NCBI RefSeq assembly: GCF_030028105.1
Contig: NC_092383.1
Span: 86,013,921-86,077,920, forward strand
DNA length: 64,000 nt
Direction: 5' to 3'
From: Mobula birostris
Lineage: Eukaryota
A model generated the notes under the pieces. The model saw only the letters and a program-made list of their open reading frames with translations, was not told the origin of the DNA and did no database searches. A program made the translations under genes and the position numbers. Position 1 is the first letter of the stretch, and every line of letters begins with the position of its first letter. Below are positions 12,987-63,099 of this stretch, in pieces.

Positions 12987-12990
12987 TGCT

Positions 12991-18787: not shown

Positions 18788-19030
18788 CTATGGAGTACCA
18801 GGAGAGAAAGCTTTCCGTCTGGGCTTTGTGGGTTGGCTTTGAAATTTGATATCTGCGTAGGTGGTGTTGTCCTCATCCATAACAGAGTGTCCTGCTCGTG
18901 ACTTCCTTTTAAATTTCATGTTTGCATACACAGTTCCATTTTCATTGTTAGCTGACTGAGCAGCTGCCTCATTGTTTTGATCATGGTGTAGATCAGCATA
19001 AACAATGTTTTCTTCCAACATGGCCGTTTC
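18788..19030 (-). CDS. Terminal cytoplasmic exon of inhibitory CD300/pIgR/MDIR-like receptor
   Basis: Acceptor ttatcatttcag|GAA (phase 0); ETAMLEENIVYADL...NGTVYANM...DNTTYADI...SPGTP*. Confidence 0.88.
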   Translation of the reverse strand, partial: ETAMLEENIVYADLHHDQNNEAAAQSANNENGTVYANMKFKRKSRAGHSVMDEDNTTYADIKFQSQPTKPRRKAFSPGTP

Positions 19031-19489
19031 CTGAAATGATAAATCAATTCCATTATCTATTGTCTGGTTGGTGAATGTGGAAGGTGAGGCACGAAAGGTT
19101 GCAGGGAGAAGGCTCCTTGCTTTCTGATCTATGGTTTTAAGTTGCCGGATTTTTAAAAAAATTATCTTATGTTTATAGCTAGAGTTCTATTCTCAACTTT
19201 AAGTGGAAACATATTCACTACTCTATAAAACAATTTGATACTCTTGCAGACATCTACCAGAACACCTTCAGTTTCCTCTCTTTAAATAAACCCTGATTCA
19301 TTCAATCAGCTTGTAGAATATAATTTTCCAGAATGTTTGACAACAGTTTATGACTCAGTGGCTGTAATCCTTAGTCCGGACCCACTACTAACTGGGCAAC
19401 AACAGCATGTTGCTTTACAACACCAACACACTAAACTGGTCGAAGGTGTTTCACAGAGTTTAGCAAGGGAAGAGGTTGAAAATGAACTT

Positions 19490-19880
19490 GAGCTAGGGCT
19501 TTTACTCTTTGGAGAGAAGGGGGATGACAGGAGACATGATAGAGGTGTACAAGATAATAAGAGGAATAGATAGAGTGGATAGCCAGCGCCCCTTCCCCAG
19601 GGCACCACTGCTCAATACAAGAGGGCATGGCTTTAAGGTAAGGGGTGGGAAGTTCAAGGGAGATATTGGAGAAGGTTTTTTACTCAGAGAGTGGTTGGTG
19701 TGTGGAATGCACTGCCTGAGTCAGTGGTGGAGGCAGATACACTAGTGAATTTTAAGAGACTACTAGACAGGTATATGGAGGAACTTAAGGTTAGGGGGTT
19801 ATATGGGAGGCAGGGTTTGAGGGTCGGCACAACATTGTGGGCTGAAGGGCCTGTAATGTGCTGTACTATTCTATGTTCTA
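19490..19880 (+). mobile_element. 5'-truncated CR1 3' end, same subfamily as 10044-14317
   Basis: GDMIEVYKIIRGIDRVDSQ..FPRAPLLNTRGHGFKVRGGKFKGD; tail tactattctatgttctatg. Confidence 0.92.
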
Positions 19881-20544
19881 TGCTCTATGTTAACTTGAGA
19901 ATTATTTGGGTAAATTACAATACTTTTAGGGTTTACAGTCTAAATGGTTTGTTGTAGCAGGTTAATTGATCACATGGGTGTAATTGAGTGGTTCGTGGGT
20001 TGGAAGGACCGGTTACTCTGCTGTATCTCTAACAAACAAAAGTTAAGAGGACAGAATTGCAGGAGTTCATGGATTTGTGGGATTTGTCCAGTATGTGGGA
20101 TTTGGGCAGCTGAAGCTACTGACATTGGTGGTGGGATTCAGAGACTGGAGGATGCACAAGAGGAACACACAGTTCTCTGAGGGTACAGCTCTTGGAGGGG
20201 AAGTGATGCCAACAAGGGAAAATGTATGGCAGAGCAGAATCCTTCAACAGTCCCCACCCTGCAGTTCCTTTGAGAAAGTGAAAAGCAACTGATGAAGTTG
20301 AGAGAACAATTGAATCCCTTTGATAACATTGACCCTAATTATTCAATTAGGACAAAGTTAAATCAATTGGGATTTTAATGAAGAAGATAATAAAAATTAA
20401 ACAAACATTCTGAAAACTGTGGAAAATATCACAAAAAATGTTGTTTATAACAGACCGAATAGACAATAGAATATTCATACTGGTGTCAGGATTGAGGGGT
20501 AGAGTGAGAAAGTTGGGTGGGTGAGGTCAGCAGAGAACAGATAT

Positions 20545-20790
20545 TTACTTATTTAGATATACCGCATGGTAACAGGCCATTCTGGCCAAACAAACCCATA
20601 CTACCCAATTAAACCCATGTGACCAAAGTAACGGACTTTGGTATGTGGGAGGAAATGGGCGCACCCAGAGGAGATCCACACAGTCATGGGGAGAACATAC
20701 AGACAGCAGCCACAGTGAATGTACGTTGCTGGCGCTGTTACAGCGTTACGCAAACCGCTATGCCAGCGTGCCATCCCCAGTTTATTCTTC
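20545..20790 (-). mobile_element. SINE (HE1-like elasmobranch SINE), degenerate
   Basis: Shares ctttgg..tgtggga..aa...gcacccag.gga.a.ccac.ca.tca.ggggaga with copies at 21.3 and 23.3 kb; (ATTT)n-like tail. Confidence 0.55.
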
Positions 20791-21228
20791 TGAATAGACT
20801 TGCCCTATTTTTCTGACTTCACATCAGAGTTTGAGACTCAGACGGATTACACAAAATGTAAGCTGGTAAATTATTAAACCCAAAGACAGATTTAGACAAT
20901 TAGACACTCGATCTCCAACAGTAGAGAAAGGACCAACCTCACTTTTCACCATTTGGTAATGATAATCAGGCCTGGAGCCACTTTGAAGAATAGTAACGCA
21001 AAATATTATGGATAGACTGAAAGAAAATCTGGATGAGCATGAGAGCAAGGGACAAATAACTGGAAGGATATGCTGATGGGATTCAGTGAGAGGGGTGTTC
21101 AGAGGTTTGTGTAAAATATTAATACTGGAATGGACTGGGAGGGGGGAATGAATGATCTGTAAACTCCTATGTAATCCAATTGTTAAACATTCTGAAACAT
21201 TCAGACACTTTATACTTCATGTCCGTAC

Positions 21229-21275
21229 CTGGGTTTCATTGTTGCCTTCTCCGTGAGATGTGTTGTGCTTCGATT
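21229..21275 (-). CDS. Short cytoplasmic exon (47 nt, phase 1->0) of the inhibitory receptor
   Basis: tgtattttccag|AA TCG AAG...ACC CAG|gtacgg; (E)SKHNTSHGEGNNETQ joins the TM exon to the terminal exon in frame. Confidence 0.75.
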
Positions 21276-21334
21276 CTGGAAAATACAACATTACTGCTAA
21301 AAATTCCATGAGGGGAGCACAGGCATGAATATGT

Positions 21335-21645
21335 ATTTACTTATTTATTGAGTGATACAACACAGAGTCGGCCCTTGCAGCCCTTTGAGCTTCGCCACCC
21401 CAGCAACCCCCGACAAACCAGATTAACCCTATCCTAATCATGCGACAATTTCCATTGACTCATTCACCTACCTGGTACGTCTTTGGACTGTGGCAGGACA
21501 CTGGAGGACCCGGAGTGTATCCATGCATCCCACAGGGAGGGCATACAGAGACTCCTTTCAGAACGGCTCTGGAATTGAACTGCAAACTCTAGAACGCCCC
21601 GAGCTGTAATAGCTTCACCTGAACCGCTAGGTTACCATGACCCCC
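21335..21645 (-). mobile_element. SINE copy
   Basis: Closely similar to 23335-23645. Confidence 0.65.
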
Positions 21646-23334
21646 ATACTGAATCACAGAACCACGGGAACCCCAGCTGCAACACAGTAATGATTCTCCA
21701 CACAGAGCAATCCTCTGCTCTGGTTACTACACAATGTTCAGAAAGGATCATAGTTTCTACAACCCCCCCACCACCTTCTCTGCTACTGAAAACTAATGTT
21801 TACCATCTTTGTACAGTGTAATGACGGTTTTGGATTTGACATTTTAATTGTTTTTCATTGTTAAAAATTCTGTCTGATCTACCAAGCATTTTCTACATTG
21901 TCTGTGTGTGCATTTAGATCAGATTTCTCCCTCACAATATGGTGGAGCAGATTATCTGACAAAATTCTCATTATCTCTCCAGGTCTCTGTGGCAGATTGT
22001 CCCTCAGACAGAAGGAACAAACTGCCCAAAATAAAAATCACCTCATTTTCCAACTGACCATAAAAAAACACTTTTCAAATTCAACACTGAGATCAACAAT
22101 TTAATCTGTTGCCTCACCCTGGGGTCATACAGAATCTGAATGTTCCATTCTCAATAAGTGGTTTTGATGACCTGAGACTATTAGTGGATGTTATGTCCCC
22201 GCCGATATGGTTTGCTATTTTATTTCTAGCCACTAGATATCACTGCTTACTTGTAAGTTTGCAGCTGTTTTTCATTCCTTACAACTGTGTTTCTAAGCAA
22301 TTGACCTTCGACATCAGGTCGGCCATTTTATAATCATTTGTATATTTTTTTCATTCAGAAACACTTTGTTACGAGTCAAATGAATTTATAATAATATTTA
22401 AATCCATCTCTTGTGAGATCATCTAGAAACACTGTCATTTTGCTCACTGAGTTCCTGGCTTACTGTAATGTGTTGCTGGACAATAGAACTGCCTTCAGAC
22501 TACAACTACACCTGGACTGGAGTTTACCTGTCTGACTAACTTAAGAAAACAGGGAAAACTCCTGAGTGAGGGCAGAACAGTGGAAGTTGAGTTGTGAACA
22601 GATTTTACTTCCCAAAGCCCGTCTCATTTTTTTATTAATAGTAGTTAACAATATAAAGAGAAATGTCAAAGGAAATCAAGAGCAGTACACTCTGTTACTG
22701 ATGAGGATAATGTCACCAATGAAGATATCAAATTTCAAAGCCCGCCCATCTTTAATTCTTCATTAATCCTATTACCACCCACCTTTTGCCTCACACATTT
22801 TCTTTTCTAGTGATTTTTTCTGTCTTGTACTCTATCAGAATCGCACTTTTTTGTGCTTGCTTCCGTGCTTCCTCTGCACCTCGAGACTTGTTATTGCTCA
22901 CATTTTCCAGTTCTGATGCAAGACCGTTGCCTTGAAGGATCAGCTGTTCCTCTCTCCACAGCTGCCATCTGACATGCTGAGCATCCAGAGCACTTTTCTG
23001 CCTGTATCTCAGGTATTGAACTTTTAGGGAATTTCTCTTTGGAAAAGAATGCATTCCTTCTGTTCAGATCTATGCAACAAACAGTGACTTGGCGATAATA
23101 CAAGGCTGAAAGTAACTGTCTGGTTTGTTGGAGAGAGAGAGAAGCCAGGAAATACGTCACGGGGAGCAGTCGAATTATTAGTTGTTATAATTTTCAGCCA
23201 ATGAGATATGAGGCTGCAGGGGCTTTATTTTCCAGTGATCAACTCAATTTCCCCATCTGAAAATAACACACAGAAGATCACTGTACTCACAGCTCTCTTT
23301 ACTGGTATACAAAGTCTATTGAAGGGACACAAGA

Positions 23335-23645
23335 TTACTCATTTATTTATTTATAGATCACAGAGTAGGCCCTTCTGGCCCTTTGAGCCATGCTGACCCA
23401 GCAACCCTGACAAACATGATTAACCTTAACCTAATCATGGGACAATTTACAATGACCAAATAACATACCTGGTACGTCTTTGGGCTGTGGGAAAAATGTA
23501 GAACACCCCGGGAAAGCCTACACACTCGATGGTGAGGACATAGAGACTCCTTACTGAATTTCACCGGAATTGAACTCCAAACTCCAAAGTACCCCGAGGA
23601 GTAATCACGTCATGCTAACCCCTACGCTACCATGGTGCCCATCTC
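23335..23645 (-). mobile_element. SINE copy
   Basis: Closely similar to 21335-21645; atttatttattt tail. Confidence 0.65.
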
Positions 23646-24179
23646 AGGATCATCTCAACAAAGCAGACCTATAAGTTAATCTACAGCAACTTTTCCAATA
23701 AGAGCAGGGAAGTTTCTCCAGTGATATGTAGTGAGTGATAGATTGGTAAAAGATACACCTGATCTTTAATTGGAGAATTGCACGTAAGTATGATTTTACA
23801 CATACATTGTCCAAATGATTACATTTAATTGGAGGTTGTACTGAGGAACAGCTTATTGAATACACTTTCAAATACTGTACAACAGCTAATTTCCCAAAAC
23901 TGAGAACAACAGGTGAGACCATCTAAATCTTTCTTCTACCCAAACTCTTGGTTCTCTGCCATTCCACAGTTGATGTGAGATTCCATCGCCTGATGTTTCA
24001 GGAATAATGGAGTCACCAGGTTACAGTGAGAGCAACACCATTCATTCATGTGTTGTAAACCAACACATCAGCACTCTAAACCTGGCTTTTTGTTCACTGC
24101 AGCCAGATCAAGTTCATTAAGATTCAGCAGCTAGCTATCATATTCATCATGAAATAATGAAAGCAAAAACAAAACCTAC

Positions 24180-24271
24180 CCTTGTTTTTTCTCTTCAGGT
24201 AGCAGAGGAGACAAATGACAAGTAGTATGAGAAGAATTCCAATGACACTGAGCACAATTATGTAAGTGTGG
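24180..24271 (-). CDS. Transmembrane exon (92 nt, phase 2->1), uncharged TM, inhibitory receptor
   Basis: cctttccttttctttaccgcag|C CAC ACT...AAC AAG G|gtaggt; HTYIIVLSVIGILLILLVICLLCYLKRKNK. Confidence 0.88.
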
Positions 24272-25022
24272 CTGCGGTAAAGAAAAGGAAAGGGTTAGTC
24301 CTTGTTCACCATTTATTCTTGGCCATTTGTAAAGTCTGACATTTACACAGCATTTTTCATGAGCTCAGGATGTCTGCAGCTCAGAAAATGAATATTAGAC
24401 ACTGTTGACTGTGGGAAATTGCAGCAGCGAATCTGCTCACAGCAAAGTCTCACAAGCAGAAATGTGACCATGACCAATGATAGTGATGTTGGTTAGAGTG
24501 TAACGATTGTCCAGGCCATTTGGGAACCCTACCATATTCCTTTACAAACATTTCATCAGAACTGTTGCACAATGGGTTTGATTGGTGTTTTCTTCTCCAA
24601 CAGACACCATTGCTGACCATGTAGCTGAACCTGTTCTTGGAATGGCCCCCATGGTTTTCTTCGTTTCGTGGCTGTCTGGACTCTTGTCTGGCTTGGATGA
24701 GTCAGGCTGAAGAGCCTGTTGTTCTAATATATAACAATGACTTTATGACTCAGAACATGAGCTTCAACTGCTATACTTAAATTATTAAATATTTAGGTTA
24801 AGAAAATTATATTTGTTTTCAGGCTTAATGCCTGTGCAATAAAATCAGGAATACTCAGTTTCCAATACATCATTTCATTGAAGTTAATCATGTCAAACAA
24901 GTGTAAATCCAGTTAAAGAGAAACAAATTTCTCTCCCACTGAATATATTTGGAAACAGTCGCAGTGAACCCTCCTGTAGAGAGAACCTTATACTTTACAT
25001 TTGAGGTGAAATAGTTTCTTAC

Positions 25023-25061
25023 CTTTGTGTACTTGTCATTGATTTTGTCACAGTATTTTCA
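25023..25061 (-). CDS. Ser/Thr-rich stalk exon (39 nt, phase 2->2)
   Basis: aatttcag|T GAA AAT...CAA AG|gtaaga; ENTVTKSMTSTQ; its AG plus the C of the TM exon gives Ser. Confidence 0.65.
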
Positions 25062-26413
25062 CTGAAATTATTTGACCCTGTTAAAAGAGTATGAAATTCA
25101 ATTTCATCTGCTTTGTACTTGCAAAACCAAAAGAGCAGAATTGTAAGACCAATAGGTACTTGAGCACGGTGGACCAAAGGTGATCTGTTATTTAATACAC
25201 TTTTAATGATTAAAGGTGAGATTTATTTGTTGCATGTATATCAGAACGTACACCACTTTTATGTTGTCCACTAATTCCCATCCTCTAACCCCAGTATGAC
25301 TTTGTGTGACAGAAACCTCAACCATTCTCAGAAGCTGTCATAAAATATTGATAACAATTTTCTATGTACGTATAGGATTTCTGTGATTCTCTTGTTGGAG
25401 GAAATCTTTCCACTCCGCCAGCGAGCACTCAGATATTTGAATAAAGCTTTTCATTTTTGAAACATTTGCTTAAACTGCACAGAGTAATAGATCTAAGTAT
25501 AAGAATGAAATGATGATCAATGTTCTCCTGTAATTGTCCCCAGTCCGGACCCTGCAGCCTGTGAAACATCCCTTTCAACATGAACTCCATCCATTCCTCA
25601 GGGAATACTTTATGCATTAAAGAGACCCCCTTCGAGCTTTTAGACCATCAAGCACAGCTTTCAAAAGAAATTTGTGAACCTATTAGATCCAAGGAAATGT
25701 GCCATGTTCAGTAAAAGCAGCAATGCTGAGTATTAGAAGTATTTTAGAAGTTAAAAGAAAACAAAGTAATTGATTAAAACACTGAAAATATAGAAAGTGA
25801 GCAAGTTTGCCAGAAACATATGTACCTATGTGAAAACTTCAATACGTATGTGAACAGAAGGTTAATTAAAACAAATATAGGATATCTAACAGACAGAAAT
25901 GGGGAAATTTATAATGGGTACAAAGAAACACAAGACCAATTCAATACATTGGTTTTGGTTTTGTCCTTCTTCACCGCATTTCCTGATACCAATGTCAGGT
26001 TAATTGATCTGTAATTTCTTCTTTTCTCTCCACCTCCTTTTAAAAATAGAGTAGTGATCTTCTCTCCAATCCATTGGAATTAAAAAGGACCAGCAATGCA
26101 TCTATATTTTCCTAATGCCAATTCCTTATGTTATCTGGGATGTAGAGTATCAGAACCTGGAGATTTATTGGTTTTCTCCCACATCAGTATTCCCAACACC
26201 TTTCCACTATTATTGGTGATTACCTGCTTTCTGCCTTTCAATAAACCCTGTGATGTCCAGTATTTCTGGGAGATAATTCTTTCCCATATTTTTTTGATCT
26301 CTCTACCTCTGAGAAAAATAACTAAATCTTTCGTGAATACAGGGTTCACCACTTTCTGAGAGAAGAAGTCTTCCCTATTCCCAGTCTTAAATGGCTCACC
26401 CTTATAGATTATT

Positions 26414-29400
26414 TTTTTCTTTTTCAATATTTGTATTGATTTCTTACATAAAAGAATACAGAGTACAGGAGGATATATATTATATCAATTGCAATATATT
26501 TAATCAGACTTATAGTCTCATTACCCCGTATTCATGTAAATTAAATTAAATTATAATATTGAAAAGTAATAATTTTATTATACAAAAAAACCTAAACACA
26601 CTACCAAGAAAAGCTGTTTGGTAAAGAAAAAAAAAAGGGAAAAAATCCTTATCATATATAAAACATATTATTAGCCAACATCTGTACATAATAACAAGTC
26701 AAAGGTTTTGAAAATAATTCAAAAAGGGTCCCCACAATGTTAGAAAGTCTTGTCTAGATTCAGAAATTGAACAACGAACCTTCTCTAAATTTAGGCATGA
26801 CATAACATCACTTAACCATTGAGCGTGAGTAGGTGGAGCAACATCCTTCCACTTAAGCAACAATACCCTCCCAGCTATAAGAGAAATAAAAGCCAAAATG
26901 TGCAAATCAGGTGTCTCCAAGATGATATATTTTCCTCCAAATAAGTCAGTCAGAAAGTTAGTAAAAATGGGACTTGAAAGAGAAAATCTCAATAAACCAA
27001 AATATTTTCTAAATTGTACCTATCAGTTAGTTTACTTAAAAATAAAGGAATTGAGGATCCAAGAAGAGAAATTATAGAAAATTTATTAACAGAGGTAGCT
27101 TCTAAAGAAACCCAAACCGAACAGTCCTCTGGGTTAACATAATATGACCAAAATGTGAGGTTCCGTATATTGACTGCCCAGTAATAAAACCTAAAATTTG
27201 GGAAAGCTAAACCTCCATTCTTTTTAGCTTTTTGAAGATGAACTTTATTTAGTTAAGAAAGTTTATTTTTCCATATATATGAAGATATGTAGAATCAAAA
27301 GAATCAAAGAAGGATTTAGGAATAAAAATGGATAAGGCCTGAAAAAGATAAAAATTTAGGCAAGATATTCATTTTAATAGAATTAGTTTGGCCAATCAAC
27401 AATAATGAAAGGGGCGACCATTTTGATAGTGCCCTTTTTATATAATTCAGTAGGGTAAAAAAATTTGCTTTAAATAAATATTTATAGTTCCTAGTAATTG
27501 TTACAGCTAAATAAGTAAATTGAATTTTTACAAATTCAAAAGGAAGATTAGTATTAATTGATACCAAATTATTCAAAGGAAAATGTTCACTTTTATGAAA
27601 GTTTAATTTATATCCTGAAAACTGACCAAAGCAGGAGAGCAAGGAAAGCACGGAAGGTACTGAAGTCTCAGCATTAGAAATATAAAGCAATAGATTGTCA
27701 GCATAAAGCAAAACTTTGTGAATAGTACCTCTCCTTAAAATACCAGTGATATGATTAGATTCTCGAAAAGCAATAGCTAAGGGTTCTAAGGCCAGATCAA
27801 AAAGCAAAGGGCTCAAAGGACAACCTTCCATGTTCCATGTTGAAGTTTAAATGTTTTGGAATTCTGAGAGTTAGTAAGAACCCGAGCAGAGGGAAATAAA
27901 TAAAGTAACTGAATCCATCGAATAAAATCGGGCCCAAAATTAAATTTTTCTGAGGTTTTAAATAAATAATTCCATTCAACCTGATCAAAAGCTTTCTCAG
28001 CATCTAAGGATATTGTACATTCTGATATCTCTTTAGAAGAAGAATAAATAACATTTAATAAACGACGAATCGACCTTCCCCGAGTGCAATGAGCATACAG
28101 CCTCGGCAATTTCCTCATAAGAAATAGGTAGATCAAACTGTTTTCGGTTATCATCAGAAAGTGTAGGGATGTTTAATTGATCTAAGAAATTATTCATTAC
28201 AGTATTATCTTTAGAAAGATCAGAACTATAAAGTTTAGAATAAAATTCTCTAAAGCTATCATTTATATCTAAATGATAAGTTGTCCTATCACCATTAGCT
28301 TTACGAATTTCTTTAATTTGCCATTTAGCTATAAATGTTTTTAATTGATTAGCCAATAATTTACCTGTTTTGCCTCCATGAATATAAAATTGACTTTTAT
28401 CTTTTAGGAGTTGAGTTTCAATTGGCTATGTTAAAAGAAGATCATATTTAGTTTAAATTTCAACACGCCTTTGATATAAAGCAGGTTCTGGAGCCAAGGC
28501 GTATTTATGATCTAATTGTTTCAACTGATTAGCTACTTCAATTCTCTCTTTATTAGCTTTTTGCTTAACATTTGCAGTACAAAAAATAATTTGTCCTCTA
28601 ATATAAACCTTAAGAGCATCCCATATAATAAGACTAGAAGTCTTTTCCCGCGTATTCTCTTCAAAAAAAGAGTAATTTGTCTCTCCAATTTTTTTTTAAA
28701 ATCCTTATCTGATAGCAAAGTTAGATTAAAATGCCAAAATCTGTTTATTTGAGGGAGACGAGGGAGATTGAAAGATAAAAACACAGGAGCATGATCTGAG
28801 ACAGCAATCTCTTTATATTCACAGCATCAAACTGATGGAATCATTTGGCAATCAATAAAAAAAAATAATCAATCCTGGAATACGTATGTTGGATATGGGA
28901 AAAAAATGAGTACTCCTTATCTATTGGATGTAAGAAATGCCAGACATCAATAATATCATATGTCATTAGAAAAGATTGAATAAACAAGGCTGATTTACTA
29001 AGTGTCGCTGGTTTGGAAGATGATCGATCTAAAACTGGGTCTAACCAGCAGTTAAAATCTCCGCTCAAGACCAGTGGGTAAAGACTTAAATCTGGCAAAG
29101 GCAAAAAAAAAACACTCAAAAAACCCTGGATCATCTATATTCGGGACATATACCTTAGCAAGTGCCATTAATTTATTATCTAATTTTCCTGATACTATAA
29201 CCAAATGCCCATTGGTACTTTATGTTGAACAAAAGAAACTGTATCTATAAAAATCAAAATCCCCTCGACTTATCCTGAAAGTAGGAATGAAATTGTTATT
29301 TTTTCCAATGACTAAAGATGCATAAGTTGTCATATTTACGAACATGAGTTTCTTGTAAAAAAATAATTGGGACCTTAAATTTTTTAATGTAGGTAAATAT

Positions 29401-30880
29401 CTCATTCCGTTTTACGGGGTAGTTTAATCCATTTACGTTAAAACTAAGTAAATTAATAGTATGATCCATTCTTAATACTACTTAAAGGAAAGGTTAGAAT
29501 AGTAACCACTGGAATGTATATTAAATCCAAACAATGAACTTTGAGATAGGGTAACCAGGCAACAAGTGTGGCTAAGTGACCAAAACAGCTTACAGAAAAG
29601 AAAACACCCCGCCTCCCACCCAAAGTCAAAAAGCCGACCAATAGACAGTCGACAGCTAAACCTAATGACATTACTTCCCAAAAGTATAGGTCCAAATAAT
29701 TTTCCAAGATTAACTGCATTCCAACCTAGACAACTCATGAGACAAAGCAACTAAACCTTATTGAAAGGAAAAACCTCAAAAATGTATAATATATAATATT
29801 AAAAAAAACTATCAAAGTTCAAAACATATTAACACTCAAGGTATTATCTCATTAAAATCTTATTTTTTAAGTAAAGCATTGAAGAGTTCAAAAAGAGAGT
29901 TAGCTGCAAAGGTATACCAAAAGTAAAAGAAGCAATTATTCATGTAGGAAGATATTAAACAGTTAGTCTCCTGATTCTAAAAAACTCTTGAGCTTCTTGT
30001 ATTGAACGGAGCCATTTCTGAGAACCATTCCTCAAAATAATTCTGAGCCGAGCAGGGTAACAGAGAGATGGCTAGAAACCTTTGTTATACAGTTCCGACA
30101 TAACCTGTTTAAACTTGAAGTGCTCATTCACCACCTCAGGTGAAAAATCCTCGACAATTCTGATCTTCTGACCGTTGTAATCAATCATACCTCTTCAATG
30201 GAATTCACGAATTAAAAGTTCTTTTGTTTGAAAATCATGAAACAGATTATCACTGGTCGGGGTCTCTCTCCCTCGACAGGTCTGGGCACGGGTGATCTAT
30301 GGGTTTGATCAATTTAAGGTGGAGATTTTAAAATTTTAGGAAATAATTTTGCCAAGAAGTTTGCAAAGAATTCCATAGGCTGATTACCTTCCATTAACTC
30401 TTCAAGACCCAGAATTCGTAGATTATTTCTTCTACTTCTGTTTTCTAAGTTGATAATCTTCTGTCTTAATTTTTCATTAGACTTTGACTGTTTTTCACAA
30501 AGCTGTTGCAGGTCTTCAATTTTCGCATCTAAAATCGTCAGAGTATCTTCATTCTTCTGTAATCGTTTATCATGTTCAATTAAGGTTTTTTGAATAGAGT
30601 CCAATTTTACATCAATTTGTTTAATTTCAGTGCTGAGGTGATGGAACTTCTGCTGGAACTCCTCTGAAAATACTTTTTTATGTTTCCGAAGTGTCTCCAT
30701 AATAGATCCCAAAGTTGCAGGAGAGTCCTCTTCTTTTTTACCTTTGGCACCCCTCATAATAAAACAATGTTATGTTTTCAAGTAAGATTTCAAAACAGCT
30801 TGGAAACAGCAAAGTAAGTAATATAGGAGCAGACACAAAAAGCTGTTACAGTACTCCATCAACAATCAGTAGGCATCTCC
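26414..30880 (-). mobile_element. L1-clade LINE, near full length (5'UTR, ORF1, internally deleted ORF2), inserted into an older CR1 fragment
   Basis: ORF1 coiled coil ...INLENRSRRNNLRILGLEE; APE (LSGDFNCWLDPVLDRSS, TYSRIDYF); RT (ISLDAEKAFDQVEW, GCPLSPLLF, LYADN); candidate TSD agattatt at 26406-26413 and 30881-30888; CR1 sequence continues on both sides. Confidence 0.9.
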
Positions 30881-32900: not shown

Positions 32901-32996
32901 CTGAGTGAAGTTCCAACAACACAATATCCAGCACACATCAGTCATTCAGTTGTACTCCATCAACCATTACAAAGAATCAAACCCTCCAGCACTTAC

Positions 32997-33319
32997 CTAT
33001 GCTGTTGACTTCAATCACATCTCTGCAGGTGCTGACACTGTTGGAGATGGACACACTGACCACTTCACTGGACTTTTCTCCTTTTCCATTAACATTTGAG
33101 GCTTTGCAATAATACATTATTTTATGGATTGACAATGTAGATCCAGATTATTGGTATCAGATGTATTTAAATCCACAGATGGGGTCTTTTCATCACTTGA
33201 GTACTGAATGGGAAGGGAGACATGGGCAGACCCACAGGACGCTGACACGGAGTCCCCACAACTTGAGCCGCTTTTTGGTGGTGAAAATCAAAGCAAAGGA
33301 ACAGACATAGAACAAGGTT
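32997..33319 (-). pseudogene. Disabled C2-type Ig exon (paralog of 39076-39396)
   Basis: cccgtag|AA CCT...ATA G|gtaagt; SVPLL*FSPP (TGA where the paralog has CGA), DSVSASC...SLPIQY...DTNNLDLHCQSIK, then a frameshift before MYYCKASN. Confidence 0.85.
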
Positions 33320-35174: not shown

Positions 35175-35495
35175 CGTCAGATACTTGGAGATGCACATCA
35201 AACGCTGGATCATTGCCAGATGTTGTAATTCCACATCTGTAATGTCCTGTATCATTAGAGACAAGATTCTCCATAGTAACAGTAAATATTCCCTGGGATG
35301 TGTTATCTCTGATTGTCATTCTTCCATACTGCTCAGTTGTCCCATTTGTATCCACTAATGATGTGCATTGGTGATCCCACATGCGGCACAAATACTTTGT
35401 GTGTGAACGGTACATTGGTGCACAGTGACAATCGATTGTGACCGCTCTTCCCACAACTCCTCTTACTTTATCTTCTGCCCATAAAGCACCTGAAA
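35175..35495 (-). CDS. Ig V-set exon V2 (CD300/pIgR-like), 321 nt, phase 1->1
   Basis: ttttccctcag|TT TCA GGT...GAC G|gtaggt; SGALWAEDKVRGVVGRAVTIDC...KYLC...C...GIFTVTMENL..NDTGHYRCG. Confidence 0.92.
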
Positions 35496-39075: not shown

Positions 39076-39396
39076 TGGTGCCATTGATTTCTGTCACGTA
39101 ACTGCAGATCTCTCCGTTGTTGAAGACTGTCGCATTAACCATTGCACTGGATCTTGCTCCAAGCCAATTCGAGGCACTGCAGTAATATTGCTGGTGTGTG
39201 TGTTTGAAGGATTGACAATGTAGAGTCAGTTCATTGGTATCTGAGATCGTCAGATACCCAGATGAGGTTTGTTCATACCATCTGTAATGAATGGGAAGGG
39301 ATCCCTGGAAGGACTCACAGGAAAGTGACACAGAGCCCCCGAGACGTGAGATATTTGCTGGTGACAGATATCGAAGCACAGGAACAGACACGAGTT
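39076..39396 (-). CDS. Ig C2/I-type exon (FCRL-like), 321 nt, phase 1->1, intact
   Basis: tttcccacag|AA CTC...ACC A|gtaagt; VSVPVL...GGSVSLSCES.QGSLPIHYRWY...QYYCSASNWLG..SS. Confidence 0.9.
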
Positions 39397-39454
39397 CTGT
39401 GGGAAACAATTAAACATTCAGACATTGAATGAACATCAGAAAATCAGACACTCT

Positions 39455-40200: not shown

Positions 40201-40521
40201 CATCATTTACTTTTAGTTCTAAATTAAATCTTGAATCGACACCTGTTGTTTCAATTCCACAGCTGTACCATCCTGAATCTCCAGAGTGAAGATCTTCCAT
40301 AGTAACAGTAAATATTCTCTGTTCCGGGTTATCTGTGATTGACACTCGTCCACTCCGTCTGTGCTGCCCATTTGTTTCCACTAAAACTGAACAATGGAGA
40401 GTCCATCCATGGCACCAATACTTTGTGTGTGAGCGGTACTTTTCTTCATAGAGACAATCGATTGTGATCGCTCTTCCCACAACTCCTCTTACATGTTTCT
40501 CTGCCCACAATGCACCTGAAA
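40201..40521 (-). CDS. Ig V-set exon V1 (CD300/pIgR-like), 321 nt, phase 1->1
   Basis: ctccctcag|TT TCA GGT...GAT G|gtaggt; AITIDC...TKYWCHGWTLHC...RIFTVTMEDL.SGDSGWYSCG, with the extra C-C' cysteine pair typical of CD300/pIgR/TREM domains. Confidence 0.93.
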
Positions 40522-41844: not shown

Positions 41845-41884
41845 CAGGTAGGAAACCAATCAGAAGAATCAATGTCCACATCAT
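41845..41884 (-). CDS. Leader (signal peptide) exon of the inhibitory receptor
   Basis: ATG ATG TGG ACA TTG...CCT G|gtgagt; MMWTLILLIGFLP, then G|TT = V-SGALWA with the V exon. Confidence 0.85.
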
Positions 41885-48800: not shown

Positions 48801-50170
48801 ATTGAAGAATGCCTTGGGATTTTCCTTTACCCTACTTGCCAAGGCCTTCTCCTGCCCCCTTCTTGCTCTTCTCAGCCCCTTCTTAAGCTCCTTTCTTGCT
48901 TCCCTATATTCCTCAATAGACCCATCTGATCCTTGCTTCCTAAACCTCATGTATGCTGCCTTCTTCCAACTGACTAGATTTTCCACCTCACTTATCACCC
49001 ATGGTTCCTTCACCCTACCATTCTTTATCCTCTTCACCGGGACAAACTTATCCCTAACATCCCGCAAGAGATCTCTAAACATCAACCACATGTCCATAGT
49101 ACATTTCCCTGCAAAAACATCATCCCAAATCATACCCGCAAGTTCTAGCCATATAGCCTCATAATTTACCCTTCCCCAATTAAAAATGTTCCTGTCCTCT
49201 CTGATTCTATCCTTTTCCATGGTAATGCTAAAGGCCAGGGAGTGGTGGTCACTGTCCCCCAGATGCTCACCCACTGAGAGATCTGTGACCTGACCCGGTT
49301 CATTAGCTAGTACTAGATCGAGTATGGCATTCTCCCTAGTCGACCTGTTCACATACTGAGACAGGAATCTGTCCTGGACACACTTAACAAACTCTGCCCC
49401 ATCTAAACCCTTGGAACTAATCAGGTGCCAATCAATATTAGGGAAGTTAAAGTCACCCATGATAACAACCCTGTTATTTTTGTACCTTTCCAAAATCTGC
49501 CTCCCAATCTGCTCCTCTGTATCTTTGCTGCTACCAGGGTGCTATAGAATACCCCCAGTAGAGTAACTGCTCCCTTCTTGTTCCTGACTTCCACCCATAC
49601 CGACTCAAAAGAGGATCCTGCTACATTACCCACCCTTTCTGTATCTGTAATAGTATCCCTGACCAGTAATGCCACCCCTTCTCCCCTTTTTCCGCCCTTT
49701 CTATCCCTTTTAAAGCATTGAAATCCAGGAATATTGAGAATCCATTCCTGCCCTGGTGCCAGCCAAGTCTCTGTAAGGGCCACTACATCATAATTCCATG
49801 TATGTATCCAAGCTCTCAGTTCATCACCTTTGTTCCTGATGCTTCTTGCATTGAGGTACACACACTTCAGCCCTTCTACCTTACTACCTTTACACCGTTT
49901 ATTCTGCTTCTCTTTCCTTAAAGCCTCTCTATATGTTAGATCTGGCTTTACTCCATGCACTTCTTTCACTGCTCTGCCGCTCCGGGTCCCATCCCCCTTG
50001 CAAATTAGTTTAAACCCTCCCGAACCATGCTAGCAAACCTACCTGCAAGGATATTGCTCCCTCTCGAGTTCAGGTGCAACCCATCCAATCTGTACAGGTC
50101 CCACCTTCCCCAGAAGAGATCCCAATGATCCAAAAATCTAATACCCTTCCCTCTGCACCAACTCCTCAGC
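42839..50170 (-). mobile_element. CR1 LINE (ORF1 3' end, ORF2, 3'UTR), split by an L1 insertion
   Basis: Same subfamily as 10044-14317 (MKEVHGVKPDLTYREALRKEKQNK); segments 42839-43859 and 48046-50170. Confidence 0.93.
43860..48031 (-). mobile_element. L1-clade LINE, complete ORF2 region (about four frameshifts) with 3'UTR and poly(A); no ORF1
   Basis: MAHSINFVSWNTNGL (ATG at 48025), FAQETH, GGDFN, ISDHAP; SLDAEKAFDRVEW, GTRQGCPLSP, LYADD; CDRC...HMFWSC; 14-bp TSD aatgtactccttcc at 43846-43859 and 48032-48045. Confidence 0.95.
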
Positions 50171-51039: not shown

Positions 51040-51471
51040 AACACTGGAAAATCTACAGACAATAGAAATCCAAACCAACCAACAGAAAATGCTGGAGGGA
51101 ACTCAGCAGGTCAGGCAGCATCTGCGGAAATGAATAGATTTCGACATTTCAGGCTGAGACTCTTCTTCAGGTCTGAGAAGGAAGCTGGAAGTTGTCTGAA
51201 TAAAAAGATGGGGGAGAGGAGGAAGGCTGTCTGGAAGGTGATCGGTGAAGCCAGATGGATGGGAATGATGGTAAAGGCTGTAAAGAAGGAATCTGATGGG
51301 AGGGTAGAGTGAACCAAAGGAGAAATGGGAGGAAAAGGGGACCCAGGAGGAAGTAAAAGACAAGTGAGGAGAAGAATGGCCTCAACCTGAAATGTCAACT
51401 ATCTGTTCATTTCCGTAGATACTGACTGATCTGCTGAGCTCCTCCAGTATTTTGTGTGTGTTACTTTTGAT
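51040..51471 (-). mobile_element. Penelope-derived short element with hammerhead motif and inverted tail
   Basis: Minus strand agac-CTGAAGA-agagtctcagcct-GAAAT-GTC; 51085-51160 is inverted at 51381-51460; candidate TSD ttcattgta at 51031-51039 and 51472-51480. Confidence 0.65.
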
Positions 51472-55500: not shown

Positions 55501-55544
55501 ATATAAAAAGCTCATAATTATATTTAACAAAATAAAAGATAACT

Positions 55545-56005: not shown

Positions 56006-56084
56006 GAGGGTATATTGAGTGTTATTTTGGATGTGAGTGGAATAGTTCCCAACCCCAACCCCTGTATGTTTTCACCGGTGCAGG

Positions 56085-58915
56085 GGATTTTTTTTGTACC
56101 TTTGAATATTTTTATTAATATTATATAAATTGCATGAATACAAATACAAAATTTATAAGGATACAATTAAGTAACACAAATTACATTACATTTAAATCAC
56201 AGTAATATGATCACAGTATCCATATTCCAAAGCAATCATGTAGAAAAAAAGATTGAATTATGAAATTCAATAAAATTATTTTATTTTATTTCATTAAAAA
56301 AATCTACCCCCACTACCAAAATGAACTGCTTGGTAAAAAAAAGACCTTACCATATAATATTATAATAATAATGGCTCAGATCAATACTTTAATAGCAGTT
56401 CAAAGATTATGAAAATAACTCAGAAAGGGTCCCCATTACATTAGAAAATCATGTTTAGAATCAGAAATCAAACAATGCATCTTCTCTAGATCAAGGCATA
56501 ACATAACATCAGATAGCCATTGAGCATGAGTGGGCAGGGCAGCCTCTTTCCACTTGAGCAAGATCAAACTCCCGGCCATGAGAGACATAAAGGCCAATAC
56601 CTGCAAATGAGATGGCTTCAGTTTTGTAGCTCTATCCGCAACAATACCAATCATGGCAGTCAGAAGATTGGGCTTAAAGCTGACATTGAAATGTGCAGAG
56701 AAAGTTTGAAATACATCTTTCCAAAATTTTTCAGGCTCAGAAACATTTAAATTAGTGTGGCCACTCCATTAGTACATCTATCACAGTAAGGGGAGATACC
56801 TGCGTAGAAACGAGAGAGCTTGTCTTTAGACATATGATCTCTATGTACCACTTCAAATTGTAATAAAGAATGATGAGCACATAATGATGAAGAATTAATC
56901 AACTTTAAAATAATCTTCCAGCTCTCTTCAGATATAAAAATCTGTAAATCCTTTTCCCAGTCTCCTTTAATTTTATCTAAAGAAGCCTTTTTCAGTCCCA
57001 ATAGCAGACCGTAAATGTAAGATATTGAACTGTTGTCAAAGGGTTTCAAATTAAAAATTGTATCTATTATATTCTTATCTGGACTTGCAGGAAATGCATG
57101 TAATTGAGATCTTAAAAATTCTCTCATCTGTAAGTATCAAAAAACGTGGGTGTTGGAAAGGTTAAATTTTGTTGAAAGTTGCACGAGAGAGATTCCTTCC
57201 ATCATACATGTCCTGAAATCGTTTAACACCCAATCTATCCCATTCTTTAAAAGATAAGTCAATTATAGATGGTTTGATAAATCAATTAGAAAAGAATGGA
57301 CTTGAGAGGGAGAATCTCAATAAACCAAAATGTTTCCGAAACTGTAACCAAATCCTCAAAGTATGCTTGACCACCACATTGTCAGTTAGTTTATTTAAAG
57401 ATAAAGGAAGCGAGGATCCGAGTAAAGAAATAATGGAAACTTTCATAATAGAGTTGACTTCCAAAGAGACCAATATAGGACAACTCTCATGGTTAATGTA
57501 ATACAACCAGAACGTAATATTTTGTACATTAACTGCCCAATAATATAACCTAAAATTGGGTAAGGCAATGCCTCCATTCTGTTTGGTTTTTTGAAGGTGA
57601 GCTTTATTTATTTGAGGTTTTTTATTCTTCCATATATAGGAAGAATGAATTGAATCCACAGAGTCAAAAAAAGATTTAGGAATAAAAACAGGCACAGCTT
57701 GAAAAAGGTATATAAATTTAGATAAGATATTCAGTTTAATAGAATTAATTCGGCCAATCACTGATAAAGAGATAGAAGACCAATTAGAAAGTGCTTTTTT
57801 AACATAATTCATTAAAGTTAAAAAAATTTCCTTAAACAAATCCTTATAATTCTTAATAATTGTTATTCCTAAATACGTAATTTGTTTTCTTAAAATTTTA
57901 AAAGGAAGGTTAATATCAGTTGGTATTAAATTGTTTAAAGGAAACAGTTCACTCTTATGTAAATTTAATTTATATCCTGAGAACTGACTAAAATTAGTCA
58001 GTAAACGGAACACAGATGGTAAAGAGGTTGTAACATTAGATATAAAAAGCAATAATTCATCAGCATAAAGCGACACTTTATGAATAGTACCTCTCCTTAA
58101 AATACCAGTAATCTCTTTAGACTCTCGAAAAGCAATTGCTAGGGGTTCTAATACCAAATCAAAAAGCAGAGGGCTCAAAGGACAACCTTGTCTAGTCCCA
58201 CATTGGAGTTTAAAGGGTTTAGAATTCTGAAGATAAGTGAAAACCCGAGCGGAGGGAAATAAATAAAGTAATTTAATCCAACGAATAAAATTAGGTCCAA
58301 CATTAAATTTTTCTAATGATGTAAAAAGATAATTCCATTCAACTCTGTTAAAGGCCTTCACCGCAATCAGGGATATCACGCATTCCGATATTTCCTTAGT
58401 TGGAGAATGCATAACATTTAACAAACGACGTATATTAAAATGGGAATATTGATTTTTAATAAATCCTGTTTGATCATCCGAAACTATAGAAGATATAATA
58501 TTTTCAAGCCTGCGAGCCAACACTTTAGATAAAATTTTAGTATCAAAATTGAGTAAGGAGATAGGTCTATATGAAGAACTGTCAGTAAGATTCTTATTCT
58601 TTTTAAGAATAAGCGAAAGGGAAGCTTTGTAAAAAGACTGCGGTAACCTTCCTACCTTAAAGGAATCTTTAAGGGGAGAACATAAATGTGGTATAAGCAA
58701 GGAGGAAAAAGCCTAATAAAACTCTCCAGAGAATCCATCGGGTCCTGGGGATTTCCCAGAATGCAATTCTCAAATAGCCTGGGCAATGTCCTCCTGGGAG
58801 ATAGCTTGATCCAATTGCCTACGATCATTTATCGAAAGATTAAGAATATTTAATTGATCTAAAACATTATTAATTGCAATATTATCATTAATAGAGTCAG
58901 AACTATACAATTTGA
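56085..58915 (-). mobile_element. 5'-truncated L1 (RT plus C-terminus), related to the 26.4-30.9 kb copy
   Basis: ORF 57282-58700: SSYRPISLLNFDTKILSKVLA, GTRQGCPLSPLLF, TIHKVSLYADE; CDRC near 56760. Confidence 0.92.
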
Positions 58916-59689
58916 AATATAAGTGCACAGTTACCTTAAACTAGTATTATGAATGTCTGTAATGTTCTTCACTTGTTGCAAGCTAGAGTCACGGAGTCAG
59001 AGTGTGAAAGCATGGAAACTCTCCATTTGGACAAATCATAAATGCCGGTCACCTGCCTTCAGTTTGCATTGGTTGGAGTAGTCAACAAAATGTATATCAT
59101 GCTATGGTTAGTTAATAGAACATGAAACAGTAACGAACAGGAAAAGGTCTGCTCTGACTCTGGCAAATAAACTGATCCAATCTGTCTGTAATATTTTCCA
59201 TATCGATCTATTCCTAACATGTTCATGTGTGTGACTAATTGCCTCTTAAATGCTATTATGATATCTACTCCCACTATCTATCTTAGCTGTACATTCCAGG
59301 CGTTTACAACTCTGTGTACATATCTACACTGGTAAATTCATTTATGTGTCACCACTCTCACCTCTCATATTAGATCCCTAGGAAAAAGAATTTGAGTCTC
59401 TGCCCTATCTACCTCTGCTGCTTATAATATCATAAACTTTTGTCTGATGTCTCCTCAGTCTCCAGAGAAGACAATCCTCATTTGTTCAATCTCTCCATAC
59501 AGTTTATATGCTGCAATCTAGAAAATAAGCAGGTGAACCTCTTCTGCAACCTGCCTCTGAGGAAAGAGCAGAGCAGAAAGCAGGTGTGATGAAGAAAGGG
59601 ATTTTCATGCAAACTCAGCATGTAATACTTGGCTTCTTTCCCTTTGAAGGCTATGTCAGTTCTCTGAGGCAACTTTAAAACTTACCAAT

Positions 59690-60560
59690 CATGTGGCAGT
59701 AACTCAATGCATGAAAGCATGCAGAGATGGTTAAGATGTTCAATTGTTGTTCAGACCAAACATCAGAATGGGGAAGAAATATGATCAGTACACTGGATGA
59801 ACTCAGCACGCCGGGCAGCATCAGTGGAAACGATGAGTTGACGTTTCGGGGCGGGACCCTTGGTCAGGACTGAAGAATGAAGGAGGTGGAAGTATTTGAA
59901 GAATGCTTGTAGGTTCAGTTGAAGGACCAGTAATTTGAAAGACAAAGGGGTGGGGGAGGGGATGCTTCGAGGATGCTTCTCCTTCCCCTCCCCCTCCCTT
60001 TGTCTTTCAAATTACTGGTCTTTCAACTGAACCTACAAACACTCTTCAAATCCTTCCACCTCCTTCATTCTTCATTCCTGACCATGGGTCCCAGCCTGAA
60101 ATGTCGACTCATCGTTTCCCCTGATGCTGCCCGACGTGCTGAGTTCATCCAGTGTAATGTAAGTGTTGCTTTGATCACAGCATCTGCAGATTATTTTGTG
60201 TTGAAGAAATATGATCAAAGTGACTTTGACCGTTGAATGAGGATTGATGCCAGACAGGGCTGTTTGAGTATCTCAGAAAATGCTGATATCCTGGAATTTT
60301 CATACACAAGTTTCTGGAGATTTTAGAGAATGGTGCAAAAACTAACAAATAAAACATCAGAGCGTCAGATCTGTGACAAACACGCCTTGTCAAAGAGAGA
60401 AGTCTGAGGAGAGCAGCAGACTGGTTCAAGTTGAGAGGAATATGACAGTAATTCAGACAACCGTGTGTTATGACAGTGATGAGTAGAAGAGCAACAAATC
60501 AAACCTCAATGTGGATCAGTTTTAGCAGCAGAAAACCACAAATATACAATCAGTAGTCAC
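59690..60560 (+). mobile_element. Tc1/mariner deletion derivative interrupted by a palindromic Penelope-derived insert
   Basis: Host sequence resumes after the duplicated gaagaaatatgatca. Confidence 0.75.
59788..60202. mobile_element. Palindromic Penelope-derived element with two inverted hammerhead motifs and a 15-bp TSD
   Basis: Arms 59790-59961 and 59984-60155 are reverse complements with few mismatches; TSD gaagaaatatgatca at 59773-59787 and 60203-60217. Confidence 0.85.
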
Positions 60561-62691
60561 TTCATCAGGTATAGGATGTACATAATAAAGAGGCAACTGA
60601 AGGTACTGTGTATAGAAATATAGAAAACCCACAGCACAATACAGGCCCTTTGGCCCACAATGCTGTGCCGAATGTGTACTTACTTTAGAAATTACCTAGG
60701 GTTACCCATAGTCCTTTATTTTTCTAAGCTACATGTAGCTATCTAGATGACTCTTAAAAGACGCTCGTAGATGCCCCCAACAGACTCACAGGACTGCATG
60801 AATTGTGTGCATCACATCGTATGAATATTGAGATTGTTGTATCAGGTAGGCACTCTTCTTAGCTGTTTGATAGTTATTTCCAGTAAAGATCTTTGTCTGG
60901 AACCTCTGCCCTCTGTACTTTCCTTATGAAACACAATGTGGAGATACTGCAGTGGGTACTCCAGAATGACAACTTCTTCCATCCTCTTCCTTGAATGCCC
61001 CATCACATCAGAAAAGTGCTCAGCAAACCACAGTACCAGGTGCTGATGAGAACAAGTGTGAAGATATGAATCACATCCTGTGTTTCACTGGTGGATTAGA
61101 GTTTCAACATTTTACAACAATTCAATGAAGTGCGTAAAAATGTTGTTTAATCATATTTGCTCAAAGCAAAACTCAATCCTGTAAACTGAGCTATGGAATC
61201 TTGCAATGTTTACCACTCTGTGCTATGTGATGCCCAATAACAGTGCAAGGCTCCATTTTAAGGCAACCCTTCCCATCAGTGGGGCAACTGCATCTGGAAA
61301 TAACTGTGGCTAATCAACATTCATGAGATAACAGTGACCTGAAGAGGTTATGAACTCAAAACAGACTCTGGTCATATTGCATCACTTTCTCTCAAATCAG
61401 GTGAAGAATGCCATGTCATCTGATCATTTGTACCTGATTAGGAGTAAGTAATTATGTTTTAGAACTTCATGATTAAAATGATGGAGTTCTCCTTCTGTCA
61501 TTTTTAAGTAAGATGATTTATTGTACAATTTTGGGTTACAGTCACAGATCGGCTTTGAGATACGCCACATCTCCTGTTTGGAATTTCACAACCAGTTGAC
61601 TGATACAAGATGCAACGAGTTGTGCATCACTCATTTTATTCATCTCCCTATATTACTTTCTATTGCTCTCTGTCATTTGACACCCTTGTACAGTGACATC
61701 AATTGTACCTGTACTGAGTAATTCTTCACAGCAATCACTGTGTAGCAATATTTCTGAACACAAAAGCAAAATAAGATAGTGGCATGTTCAATTGTTGTGG
61801 CTTCTATGAGCTCAACCAAATGTGTCATTGCCCATTTTAAATGTAGTTTTTACAAACACCAGACCCTGCTGGACATTAACAATATTTCTGAACACACAAG
61901 CAAAATAAGGTGGTGGCATTTTCGATCATCGTGACTGTATTTTACTAATATCTTAAATGTGTTATAGGTACTTTGTGCCATGTGTGAGTATTGGTACTAT
62001 GTTTTGTACCTTGGCCCCAGAGTAACGCTGTTTCAGTCTGTATTCATGCATATTCGTGTATGGTGGTTGATTGACAATAAAACTTGAACTATGAACCATG
62101 AATATGTACCTATCTGAAATGAAATCTTTGAATAATAGAAATACCCAGTAGGTCCGACAGCTTCTGAAGAGATAAAAGTCAAGTGAATACTTCATAAATT
62201 TGTTCTGATGGAATGTCAGAATGAGTGATTAACTGCTTCTCTTTCCTGAAGATTCACAACTGTTGACAACAAAGGGAAGTCCAGGGGACTGAATGTGATC
62301 TATTTCCCATAAATGCATTTCAGTTCGAAACAAAACCCTTTCTTGATAATATCAGTTTATGAAGAAGAATCGGAATTGATTAGCATTGATTGGTTATTAG
62401 AATAAAAAACATCTGCAGACATTTGAATCCATAGAACAAAGTTTAACCATGCAAAAAGGTATTAATCAGTTCAGAGGTATGTAAGGGTTAAATTTTTTGT
62501 TGGGGTGATGAAGGAAGCATTGGGAAAACTGCCAGTATATTGATATCCTTGAGGGTAACATGTCAGAGAAGGAATTCAAAAATCAAAGTCACTGCCTTGA
62601 AGGATGAGGACATTGTCTTGTAATTTTTTATCTTCACGGAGACAGCAGTTGAATTCTCACAGCACAAAGTGGGCGGAAAAACTAATATTTG

Positions 62692-62735
62692 TTCTTGATG
62701 CAAAATTGCAGCATTCTTGATGCAAAATTGCAGCA
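62692..62735. repeat. Perfect 22-bp tandem duplication
   Basis: ttcttgatgcaaaattgcagca twice. Confidence 0.95.
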
Positions 62736-62867
62736 CAGTCAGTGTAATCTGGGAGTCTTCACTTTACCTCCTGGACCACCATGCTGTGAGGATCAGATTC
62801 TTCACGTCTCTGGAAAAGGCAATGATCAATCCATGAGATTTTTCGACAATGGGATCTCTGCTCTATT

Positions 62868-62888
62868 TCACTCACTACGAAATTCCGT
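62868..62888 (-). CDS. Terminal micro-exon of a putative activating receptor
   Basis: atgcttgtttcag|ACG GAA TTT CGT AGT GAG TGA (TEFRSE*), phase 0, ~120 nt downstream of the TM donor. Confidence 0.6.
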   Translation of the reverse strand, partial: TEFRSE

Positions 62889-63008
62889 CTGAAACAAGCA
62901 TTCCATACATTGACATCAAGCATTCTACACACAAGAGAGCATGTCAAAGCTGAGTTATATCATGAGCAGTATATTTGAAAGTGATTCCACTGATGTCCAT
63001 AAGCCTAC

Positions 63009-63099
63009 CTTAGTTACTCTTGTGAACCACATGACTGAACTGGTGCTGATCATCAGGAGAGCGAAGAGCAGCCAACGGCCCACCTGCCATATCATGAAA
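63009..63099 (-). CDS. Transmembrane exon with an intramembrane Arg (putative activating receptor), 91 nt, phase 2->0
   Basis: tctcttcccctttgctcag|T TTC ATG...ACT AAG|gtaggc; FMIWQVGRWLLFALLMISTSSVMWFTRVTK. Confidence 0.78.

Follow-up and report, generated by a model that had tools for sequence, protein, structure and literature searches.

Does the genome of a cartilaginous fish place an activating and an inhibitory immune-type receptor side by side, and do the two neighbors work as a pair? This question is raised by a stretch of 64,000 nucleotides (nt) of the Mobula birostris genome (contig NC_092383.1, positions 86,013,921 to 86,077,920), referred to here as the window, in which two receptor genes of the manta ray follow each other on the minus strand. 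The upstream gene, of which only the last two exons lie inside the window, encodes a transmembrane (TM) helix that carries an arginine, and is of the activating type. The downstream gene, called here the ITIM gene, encodes an uncharged TM helix and a cytoplasmic tail with an immunoreceptor tyrosine-based inhibitory motif (ITIM). The explanation that we favor overall is that both genes belong, very probably, to the family of modular domain immune-type receptors (MDIR), and that the window is a piece of the manta MDIR cluster.

The 3′ end of the activating gene is spliced and expressed in the manta ray. Its TM exon (63009-63099, minus strand) encodes the helix FMIWQVGRWLLF..., in which the arginine codon is CGT (63075-63077). 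The exon is preceded by a pyrimidine tract with a CAG acceptor (phase 2), is followed by an AAG/GTAGGC donor (phase 0), and shows 87% identity to the TM exons of the annotated ray proteins P0049 and P0020; the helix carries the sequence W-x-V-G-R-W, which is conserved in the family. The RNA evidence consists of contigs from four runs (X3, X4, X6, and X7) of a single study, and such contigs can prove presence but not absence. The joint 62809/63009 was found in contigs of all four runs at a depth of 31-181, and sampled words of the TM exon were all present in these runs. The contigs across the joint were free of mismatches over 1277 + 93 nt, with the intervening 199 nt (GT..AG, minus strand) skipped, and they extended about 1.3 kb past the joint to about 61520, covering 61520-62809 without a mismatch.

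These results upheld the original prediction of a real arginine-bearing TM exon at 63009-63099 and settled its concern that this exon might never be spliced, since the exon is joined to 62809 in each of the four runs. The prediction had, however, placed the end of the gene at 63009 and given it a tail of about 10 residues. In fact, the further exon that begins at 62809 adds RREESDPHSMVVQEVK and a stop, and the complete cytoplasmic tail is TRVTKRREESDPHSMVVQEVK, 21 residues long and free of tyrosine. This tail gave a 76% match to P0020 and P0091, and more than 25 annotated ray proteins, skate MDIR5 included, have ends that match its C-terminus FMIWQVGRWLLFALLMISTSSVMWFTRVTKRREESDPHSMVVQEVK, which is followed by the stop. 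On the 5′ side, the RNA contigs reach 134 nt upstream of the TM exon, and this overhang is absent from 63102-64000; therefore, the preceding exon lies beyond the window, as had been expected for the ectodomain. The visible 30 letters of the overhang put ...EYSFTTVSSVS ahead of FMIWQVGRW. A tblastn search over 63100-64000 found no stalk or immunoglobulin (Ig) exon of the activating gene.

Two other ways of ending the activating gene were considered and rejected. A short last exon of the kind found in P0005 (KPEELSSQLGP) has its sole pattern match on the minus strand at 51171, in the wrong phase and within a repeat, and this candidate was replaced by the true last exon at 62809 because of the RNA joint. 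Read-through of the donor at 63009, as in the Narcine model P0012 (TKVGL...), was rejected as all four manta runs splice there. With the 50-residue TM stretch of P0005 as query, a word-indexed search for homologues returned P0005 alone and was uninformative.

Several lines of evidence place the two genes in the MDIR family. First, when a family member from a skate was used as query, 110 proteins of sharks, rays, and chimaeras were returned, including clearnose skate MDIR2, MDIR3, and MDIR5 (P0034, P0024, and P0038, respectively) at E values of 1e-175 to 1e-232. The ectodomain of the ITIM gene is 61-63% identical to these three proteins over 230-330 residues (61% for MDIR3), and its ITIM-bearing tail is 46% identical to that of MDIR3. 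Second, the ectodomain is modular and built of V and C2 domains, in the order V-C2-V with a dead C2 exon, while the relatives show builds of V-C2, V-C2-V-C2, and longer. Compared with the solved structures in the PDB, the first V domain (V1) gave pIgR (1.9e-47) and CD300 (1.2e-18), and then NKp44, TIM, FCMR, and TREM2, whereas the first C2 domain (C2a) gave FCRL5 (5.9e-36) and is of the FcRL5/CD22 type. Third, both receptor forms are present: an arginine-bearing TM helix with a 21-residue tail that lacks tyrosine, and an uncharged TM helix with the tail motifs IVYADL and TTYADI.

The MDIR were described in 2006 as a multigene family of the clearnose skate with activating and inhibitory forms, and with ectodomains that combine one to six Ig domains from a small number of subfamilies (Cannon et al., Immunogenetics 58:362, pmid 16738934, as related in a passage of PMC3031540). 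The family and its activating/inhibitory duality have thus been known since 2006, and the manta genes are further, ordinary members. Compared to skate MDIR1-5 (Rostroraja (Raja) eglanteria), they show the same domain types in the same order (V-C2 repeats). The activating gene resembles MDIR5, which also has an arginine-bearing TM helix and a short tail, with the end SWKVGRWLLF...KKRDESEPRHSAHELQ and the C-terminal stretch SWKVGRWLLFLLLVIWSISTAVFTRGSKKRDESEPRHSAHELQ. The differences are the species, as the manta belongs to the Myliobatiformes, and the three working Ig domains (V-C2-V) of the manta ITIM gene, which has this number because its fourth exon died. Furthermore, the genomic tandem order, activating and then inhibitory, was seen directly in the manta.

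Two better-known families share part of this architecture. Mammalian CD300 (CMRF35-like) has the same type of V domain, pIgR-like with two disulfides and followed by stalk and TM helix, and V1 of the manta gene agrees with this type in its four cysteines; many ray members carry the NCBI name "CMRF35-like molecule." The division of CD300 into ITIM-bearing CD300A/F and adaptor-coupled CD300C/LB/E with a charged TM helix follows the same paired logic as the manta genes. However, the V domain is the only Ig domain of CD300 proteins, which lack C2 domains of the FcRL type, whereas the manta receptors have several Ig domains, among them an FcRL-type C2. The TM charge of CD300 is a lysine or a glutamate rather than the arginine of W-x-V-G-R-W. 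Judged by their domains, the manta genes appear to be relatives, not members, of CD300. As for pIgR, it is the best-scoring solved structure for the V domains, which accounts for the automatic name "pIgR-like." However, pIgR consists of V-type domains only, four to five in number, its long tail serves transcytosis, and it lacks both an ITIM and an arginine-bearing TM helix; in the manta genes, C2 alternates with V, the tails are ITIM-bearing or 21 residues long, and nothing points to Ig transport.

The ITIM gene was modeled by mapping P0011 and other relatives onto the window. P0011 is a stingray protein of 597 residues with the build V-C2-V-C2-stalk-TM-ITIM, and was found by a search with the tail exon. 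The gene (41884-18788) has eight exons in the order leader-V-C2-V-stalk-TM-cyt1-tail, where cyt1 is a small cytoplasmic exon (Table 1). The joined exons form an open frame of 479 codons, GT/AG bounds every intron, and each functional Ig domain is encoded by a separate 321-nt exon of phase 1. The TM helix, IIVLSVIGILLILLVICLLCY, is uncharged. The tail exon follows a TTTCAG acceptor and reads ETAMLEENIVYADLHHDQ...GTVYANMKFKRKSRAGHSVMDEDNTTYADIKFQSQPTKPRRKAFSPGTP up to its stop; of its tyrosine motifs, IVYADL (18989-19006) fits the ITIM consensus, TTYADI (18848-18865) fits the consensus of the immunoreceptor tyrosine-based switch motif (ITSM), and TVYANM (18917-18934) is a near-ITSM. These exons and motifs confirmed the earlier claim of an ITIM gene with an uncharged TM helix about 21 kb downstream on the same strand, and the V exon at 40201-40521 has exactly the coordinates that had been given for it. 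Between the poly(A) site of the activating gene and the ATG of the ITIM gene (41884) lie about 19.6 kb; measured from the arginine-bearing TM exon, the distance is about 21 kb. An inverted relic of the tail exon was also seen on the plus strand at 22660-22748, within the intron that separates the TM exon from cyt1; its 89 nt match 18829-18917 with 82% identity, and the tyrosine of TYADI is lost in it (KCQRKSRAVHSVTDEDNVTNEDIKFQS).

Table 1. Exons and intron of the two receptor genes in the window
Feature	Position	Strand	Remarks
TM exon, upstream activating-type gene (probable MDIR)	63009..63099	minus	(S)FMIWQVGRWLLFALLMISTSSVMWFTRVTK; RNA splicing and homology
Intron, activating gene, TM exon to last exon	62810..63008	minus	199 nt, GT..AG
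Last exon, activating gene	61500..62809	minus	coding part 62759-62809, RREESDPHSMVVQEVK and stop; 3′ untranslated region ~1.25 kb; AATAAA 61517-61522
Leader exon, ITIM gene	41845..41884	minus	MMWTLILLIGFLP + 1 nt, GT donor; 100% identical to P0070 residues 1-13
V1 exon, pIgR/CD300-type V-set, four Cys	40201..40521	minus	Pfam V-set 3.4e-11; 100% identical to P0070
C2a exon, FcRL-type C2 Ig	39076..39396	minus	Pfam Ig_3 2.7e-7; 100% identical to P0070
V2 exon, second V-set	35175..35495	minus	Pfam V-set 1.2e-10; DNA 77% identical to V1
C2b, decayed fourth Ig exon	32997..33319	minus	stop and frameshift
Stalk exon	25023..25077	minus	GSNNFSENTVTKSMTSTQ + 2 nt, phase-2 donor; 89% identical to P0060
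TM exon, ITIM gene	24180..24271	minus	HTYIIVLSVIGILLILLVICLLCYLKRKNK; uncharged helix
cyt1, small cytoplasmic exon	21229..21275	minus	ESKHNTSHGEGNNETQ
Tail, last coding exon	18788..19030	minus	three Tyr motifs; stop TAG; 96% identical to P0060 tail, 80% to P0011

Several observations weigh against a working ITIM receptor. The fourth Ig exon (C2b) of the gene is dead: it has an in-frame TGA (33288-33290) and a deletion of about 10 nt with a frameshift at about 33106-33131, its length of 323 nt is not a multiple of 3 plus 1, and the conserved tryptophan of the domain is lost. The open frame of the gene therefore requires C2b to be skipped. The NCBI model for this locus, P0070 (Mobula birostris "polymeric immunoglobulin receptor-like," assembly GCA_030028105.1), matches the leader, V1, C2a, and V2 at 100% identity, but has neither the TM nor the ITIM exons; after V2 it uses a cryptic acceptor at 33102 in the dead C2b (piece 32992-33102) and then ends in two exons derived from long interspersed nuclear elements (LINEs), with pieces like their first and second open reading frames (ORF1 and ORF2) at 30389-30742 and 28036-28182 (minus strand). 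This ending is either a mis-annotation or a real LINE exonization that gives a TM-less product. Moreover, none of the contigs from the four RNA runs covered the TM, cyt1, or tail exon with the ITIM gene's own sequence; the only two that map on these exons, of 63 and 108 nt, are about 95% identical and probably derive from paralogues.

These observations, along with the LINE insertions in the long introns and the inverted tail-exon relic, could mean that the ITIM gene is decaying or silent, with no product or only the TM-less, LINE-ended one, and that the locus has no working pair. We regard this as unlikely, though it deserves some weight. In the remaining eight exons the frame is open and the splice sites are canonical, and skipping of C2b preserves the frame because all Ig exons are of phase 1. 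An annotated protein of Mobula hypostoma (P0060, 479 amino acids) has the identical C2b-less build and is 87.9% identical to the ITIM gene product without a gap. The identity between the two rises from 80% in V1 through 85% in C2a and 91% in V2 to 96% in the tail; the tail is thus the best conserved part, which argues for constraint, and the gradient agrees with a ligand-binding tip that varies and a signaling tail under constraint. As to the missing coverage, four samples of one study can show what is transcribed, not what is silent. In the reading retained here, the ITIM gene is predicted to encode a working receptor, and its ITIM form may be expressed.

Are the two forms paired? Comparison of family members indicated that activating and inhibitory receptors are paired at the level of the family and of the genome. 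In the same manta genome, P0053 (with an arginine-bearing TM helix) and P0032 (with an ITIM) have ectodomains with 91% identity over 459 residues, and from the TM helix on they are unrelated. In a tree of the N-terminal V-C2 unit, these two proteins are sisters and are jointly nearest to the ITIM gene of the window. The activating or inhibitory label changes at least 16 times over the 55 labelled proteins of this tree, which is close to random placement; with the labels so interspersed, tails must have been swapped many times on similar ectodomains. In the electric ray Narcine bancroftii, protein P0012 (XP_069798680.1) represents an activating gene fused to the inhibitory gene that follows it; order and strand are those of the manta genes, and its two V-C2-stalk ectodomains are identical in 242 of 245 residues. 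As a public model, P0012 is chimaeric: it consists of an MDIR with an arginine-bearing TM helix, read through its donor, of transposon ORFs, and of the neighboring ITIM-bearing MDIR.

For the two neighbors in the window, the case is more conditional. The ectodomain of the activating gene lies outside the window, which weighs against calling the two a pair, and the family link of this gene comes from its stalk, TM helix, and tail. The neighbors might thus be adjacent members of the cluster with different ectodomains and ligands, whose true partners are elsewhere in the cluster. Consistent with this, the closest activating relative found for the ITIM gene by sequence is P0053, but its TM exon and that at 63009-63099 share only 77% identity, so that P0053 is another gene. 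On the other hand, the upstream gene has its matches for stalk, TM helix, and tail in P0049 and P0020, of which the ectodomains are 82-84% identical to that of the ITIM gene, and the adjacent Narcine genes show the same order together with near-identical ectodomains. We hold separate partners to be the less probable arrangement, yet a serious contender, and the two neighbors may share ligand specificity. The earlier proposal of a paired-receptor system in a cartilaginous fish therefore stands at the level of the family, through P0053/P0032 and the Narcine proteins, while the novelty that it implied does not, given the description of the MDIR in 2006.

By what mechanism might such receptors signal? 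In GPVI, FcalphaRI, LILRA, and NKp46, an arginine in the outer third of the helix pairs with an aspartate of the adaptor, and phosphorylated ITIMs and ITSMs bind SHP-1/2. The activating manta gene shares with mammalian LILRA, GPVI, FcalphaRI, NKp46, and OSCAR a TM helix with an arginine in its outer third, and a short tail devoid of signaling motifs, and the mammalian receptors also have ITIM-bearing sister genes (LILRB and KIR). Their C2-only Ig ectodomains are unrelated to that of the manta receptor, however, and the likeness would be functional only. By analogy with the mammalian receptors that have an arginine or lysine in the TM helix, the buried arginine of the manta receptor would pair with an aspartate in the helix of an adaptor dimer that carries ITAMs (immunoreceptor tyrosine-based activation motifs), of the FcR-gamma, CD3-zeta, or DAP12 kind, and the adaptor would signal via Syk-family kinases. 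Conversely, the single ITIM and the one or two ITSM-like tyrosines in the tail of the ITIM gene, once phosphorylated, would recruit SHP-1/2 and dampen signaling. FcR-gamma may be one candidate partner among CD3-zeta-like and DAP12-like chains. It must be weighed against this proposal that in a 2014 survey no FcR-gamma chain came to light in the genomes of sharks (PMC4016189). In a search of the literature on FcR-gamma or DAP12 in cartilaginous fish, this negative report was the only one found.

Conservation of the TM helix bears on the same issue. The pattern [W/Y]-x-V-[G/I/L]-R-W is present in a set of 43 ray, skate, and shark sequences, in which the positions of the pattern are fixed by construction. 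Outside the pattern the helix is also nearly invariant: F is found at +4 in 41 of the 43 sequences, L at +7 in all 43, and I at +9 in 40. The ITIM forms reach as far as the chimaera Callorhinchus. Such conservation of the helix fits a helix-helix interface. The arginine could instead lie at the outer membrane interface and position the helix, or it could serve homo-oligomerization or another membrane partner, with no ITAM adaptor involved. Its location only 6 residues into the hydrophobic stretch agrees with this, as does the reported absence of FcR-gamma from shark genomes (PMC4016189). We consider such a role improbable on four grounds. First, the position of the arginine is that seen in GPVI, FcalphaRI, LILRA, and NKp46, if the analogy with these receptors holds. 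Second, the part of the helix past the arginine has 17 residues and is too short to span the membrane alone. Third, the whole helix is unusually conserved in sharks and rays, as expected of a helix-helix interface. Fourth, the tail is short and lacks tyrosine, while the sister forms bear ITIMs. Coupling of the arginine to an ITAM adaptor is still the reading that we prefer.

The rest of the window is rich in repeats. LINE-like ORFs for reverse transcriptase and endonuclease (minus strand) are found at 7645-8535, 10208-13806, 43445-43867, 45479-49541, and 57285-58712, and they occupy the flanks and the spacer of about 20 kb between the receptor genes. Very high depth of RNA contigs, from thousands to more than 20,000, was seen at 59676-59872, 60464-60857, and 63616-64000; these are transcribed copies of repeats and are abundant. 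In the joints 59780-59784 > 60263-60266, about 40 letters are replaced. Downstream of the tail exon of the ITIM gene and in its introns, the repeats at 18500-18696, 19485-19878, and 23425-23621 likewise have an RNA depth of thousands to tens of thousands. Many contigs join these three to each other, as is typical of dispersed repeat families.

What does the locus mean for the biology of these receptors? Existing knowledge of the family is unchanged, as the MDIR of the skate, with their duality, were already described in 2006 (as related in the same passage of PMC3031540). RNA splicing confirms that the manta expresses an activating-type MDIR gene, with an arginine in its TM helix, next to a gene of the ITIM type. 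The results are also of use for annotation, as such genes carry the NCBI names "pIgR-like," "CMRF35-like," and "FcRL5," and the model of the ITIM gene ends in LINE sequence. Furthermore, the repeated swapping of activating and inhibitory tails on near-identical ectodomains in sharks and rays is a hallmark of paired receptors under pathogen pressure. The findings may also aid the hunt for the elasmobranch ITAM adaptor. A bolder proposal, to which we attach very little probability, is that the invariant helix W-x-V-[G/I/L]-R-W-x-x-F-x-L-L, shared by sharks and rays, marks coupling to an ITAM adaptor of cartilaginous fish that awaits characterization and, separately, that the LINE-ended transcript of the ITIM gene encodes a soluble decoy. 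If that were true, the expressed manta gene would provide a handle for finding the adaptor partner and for dating the origin of the arginine-aspartate adaptor assembly.

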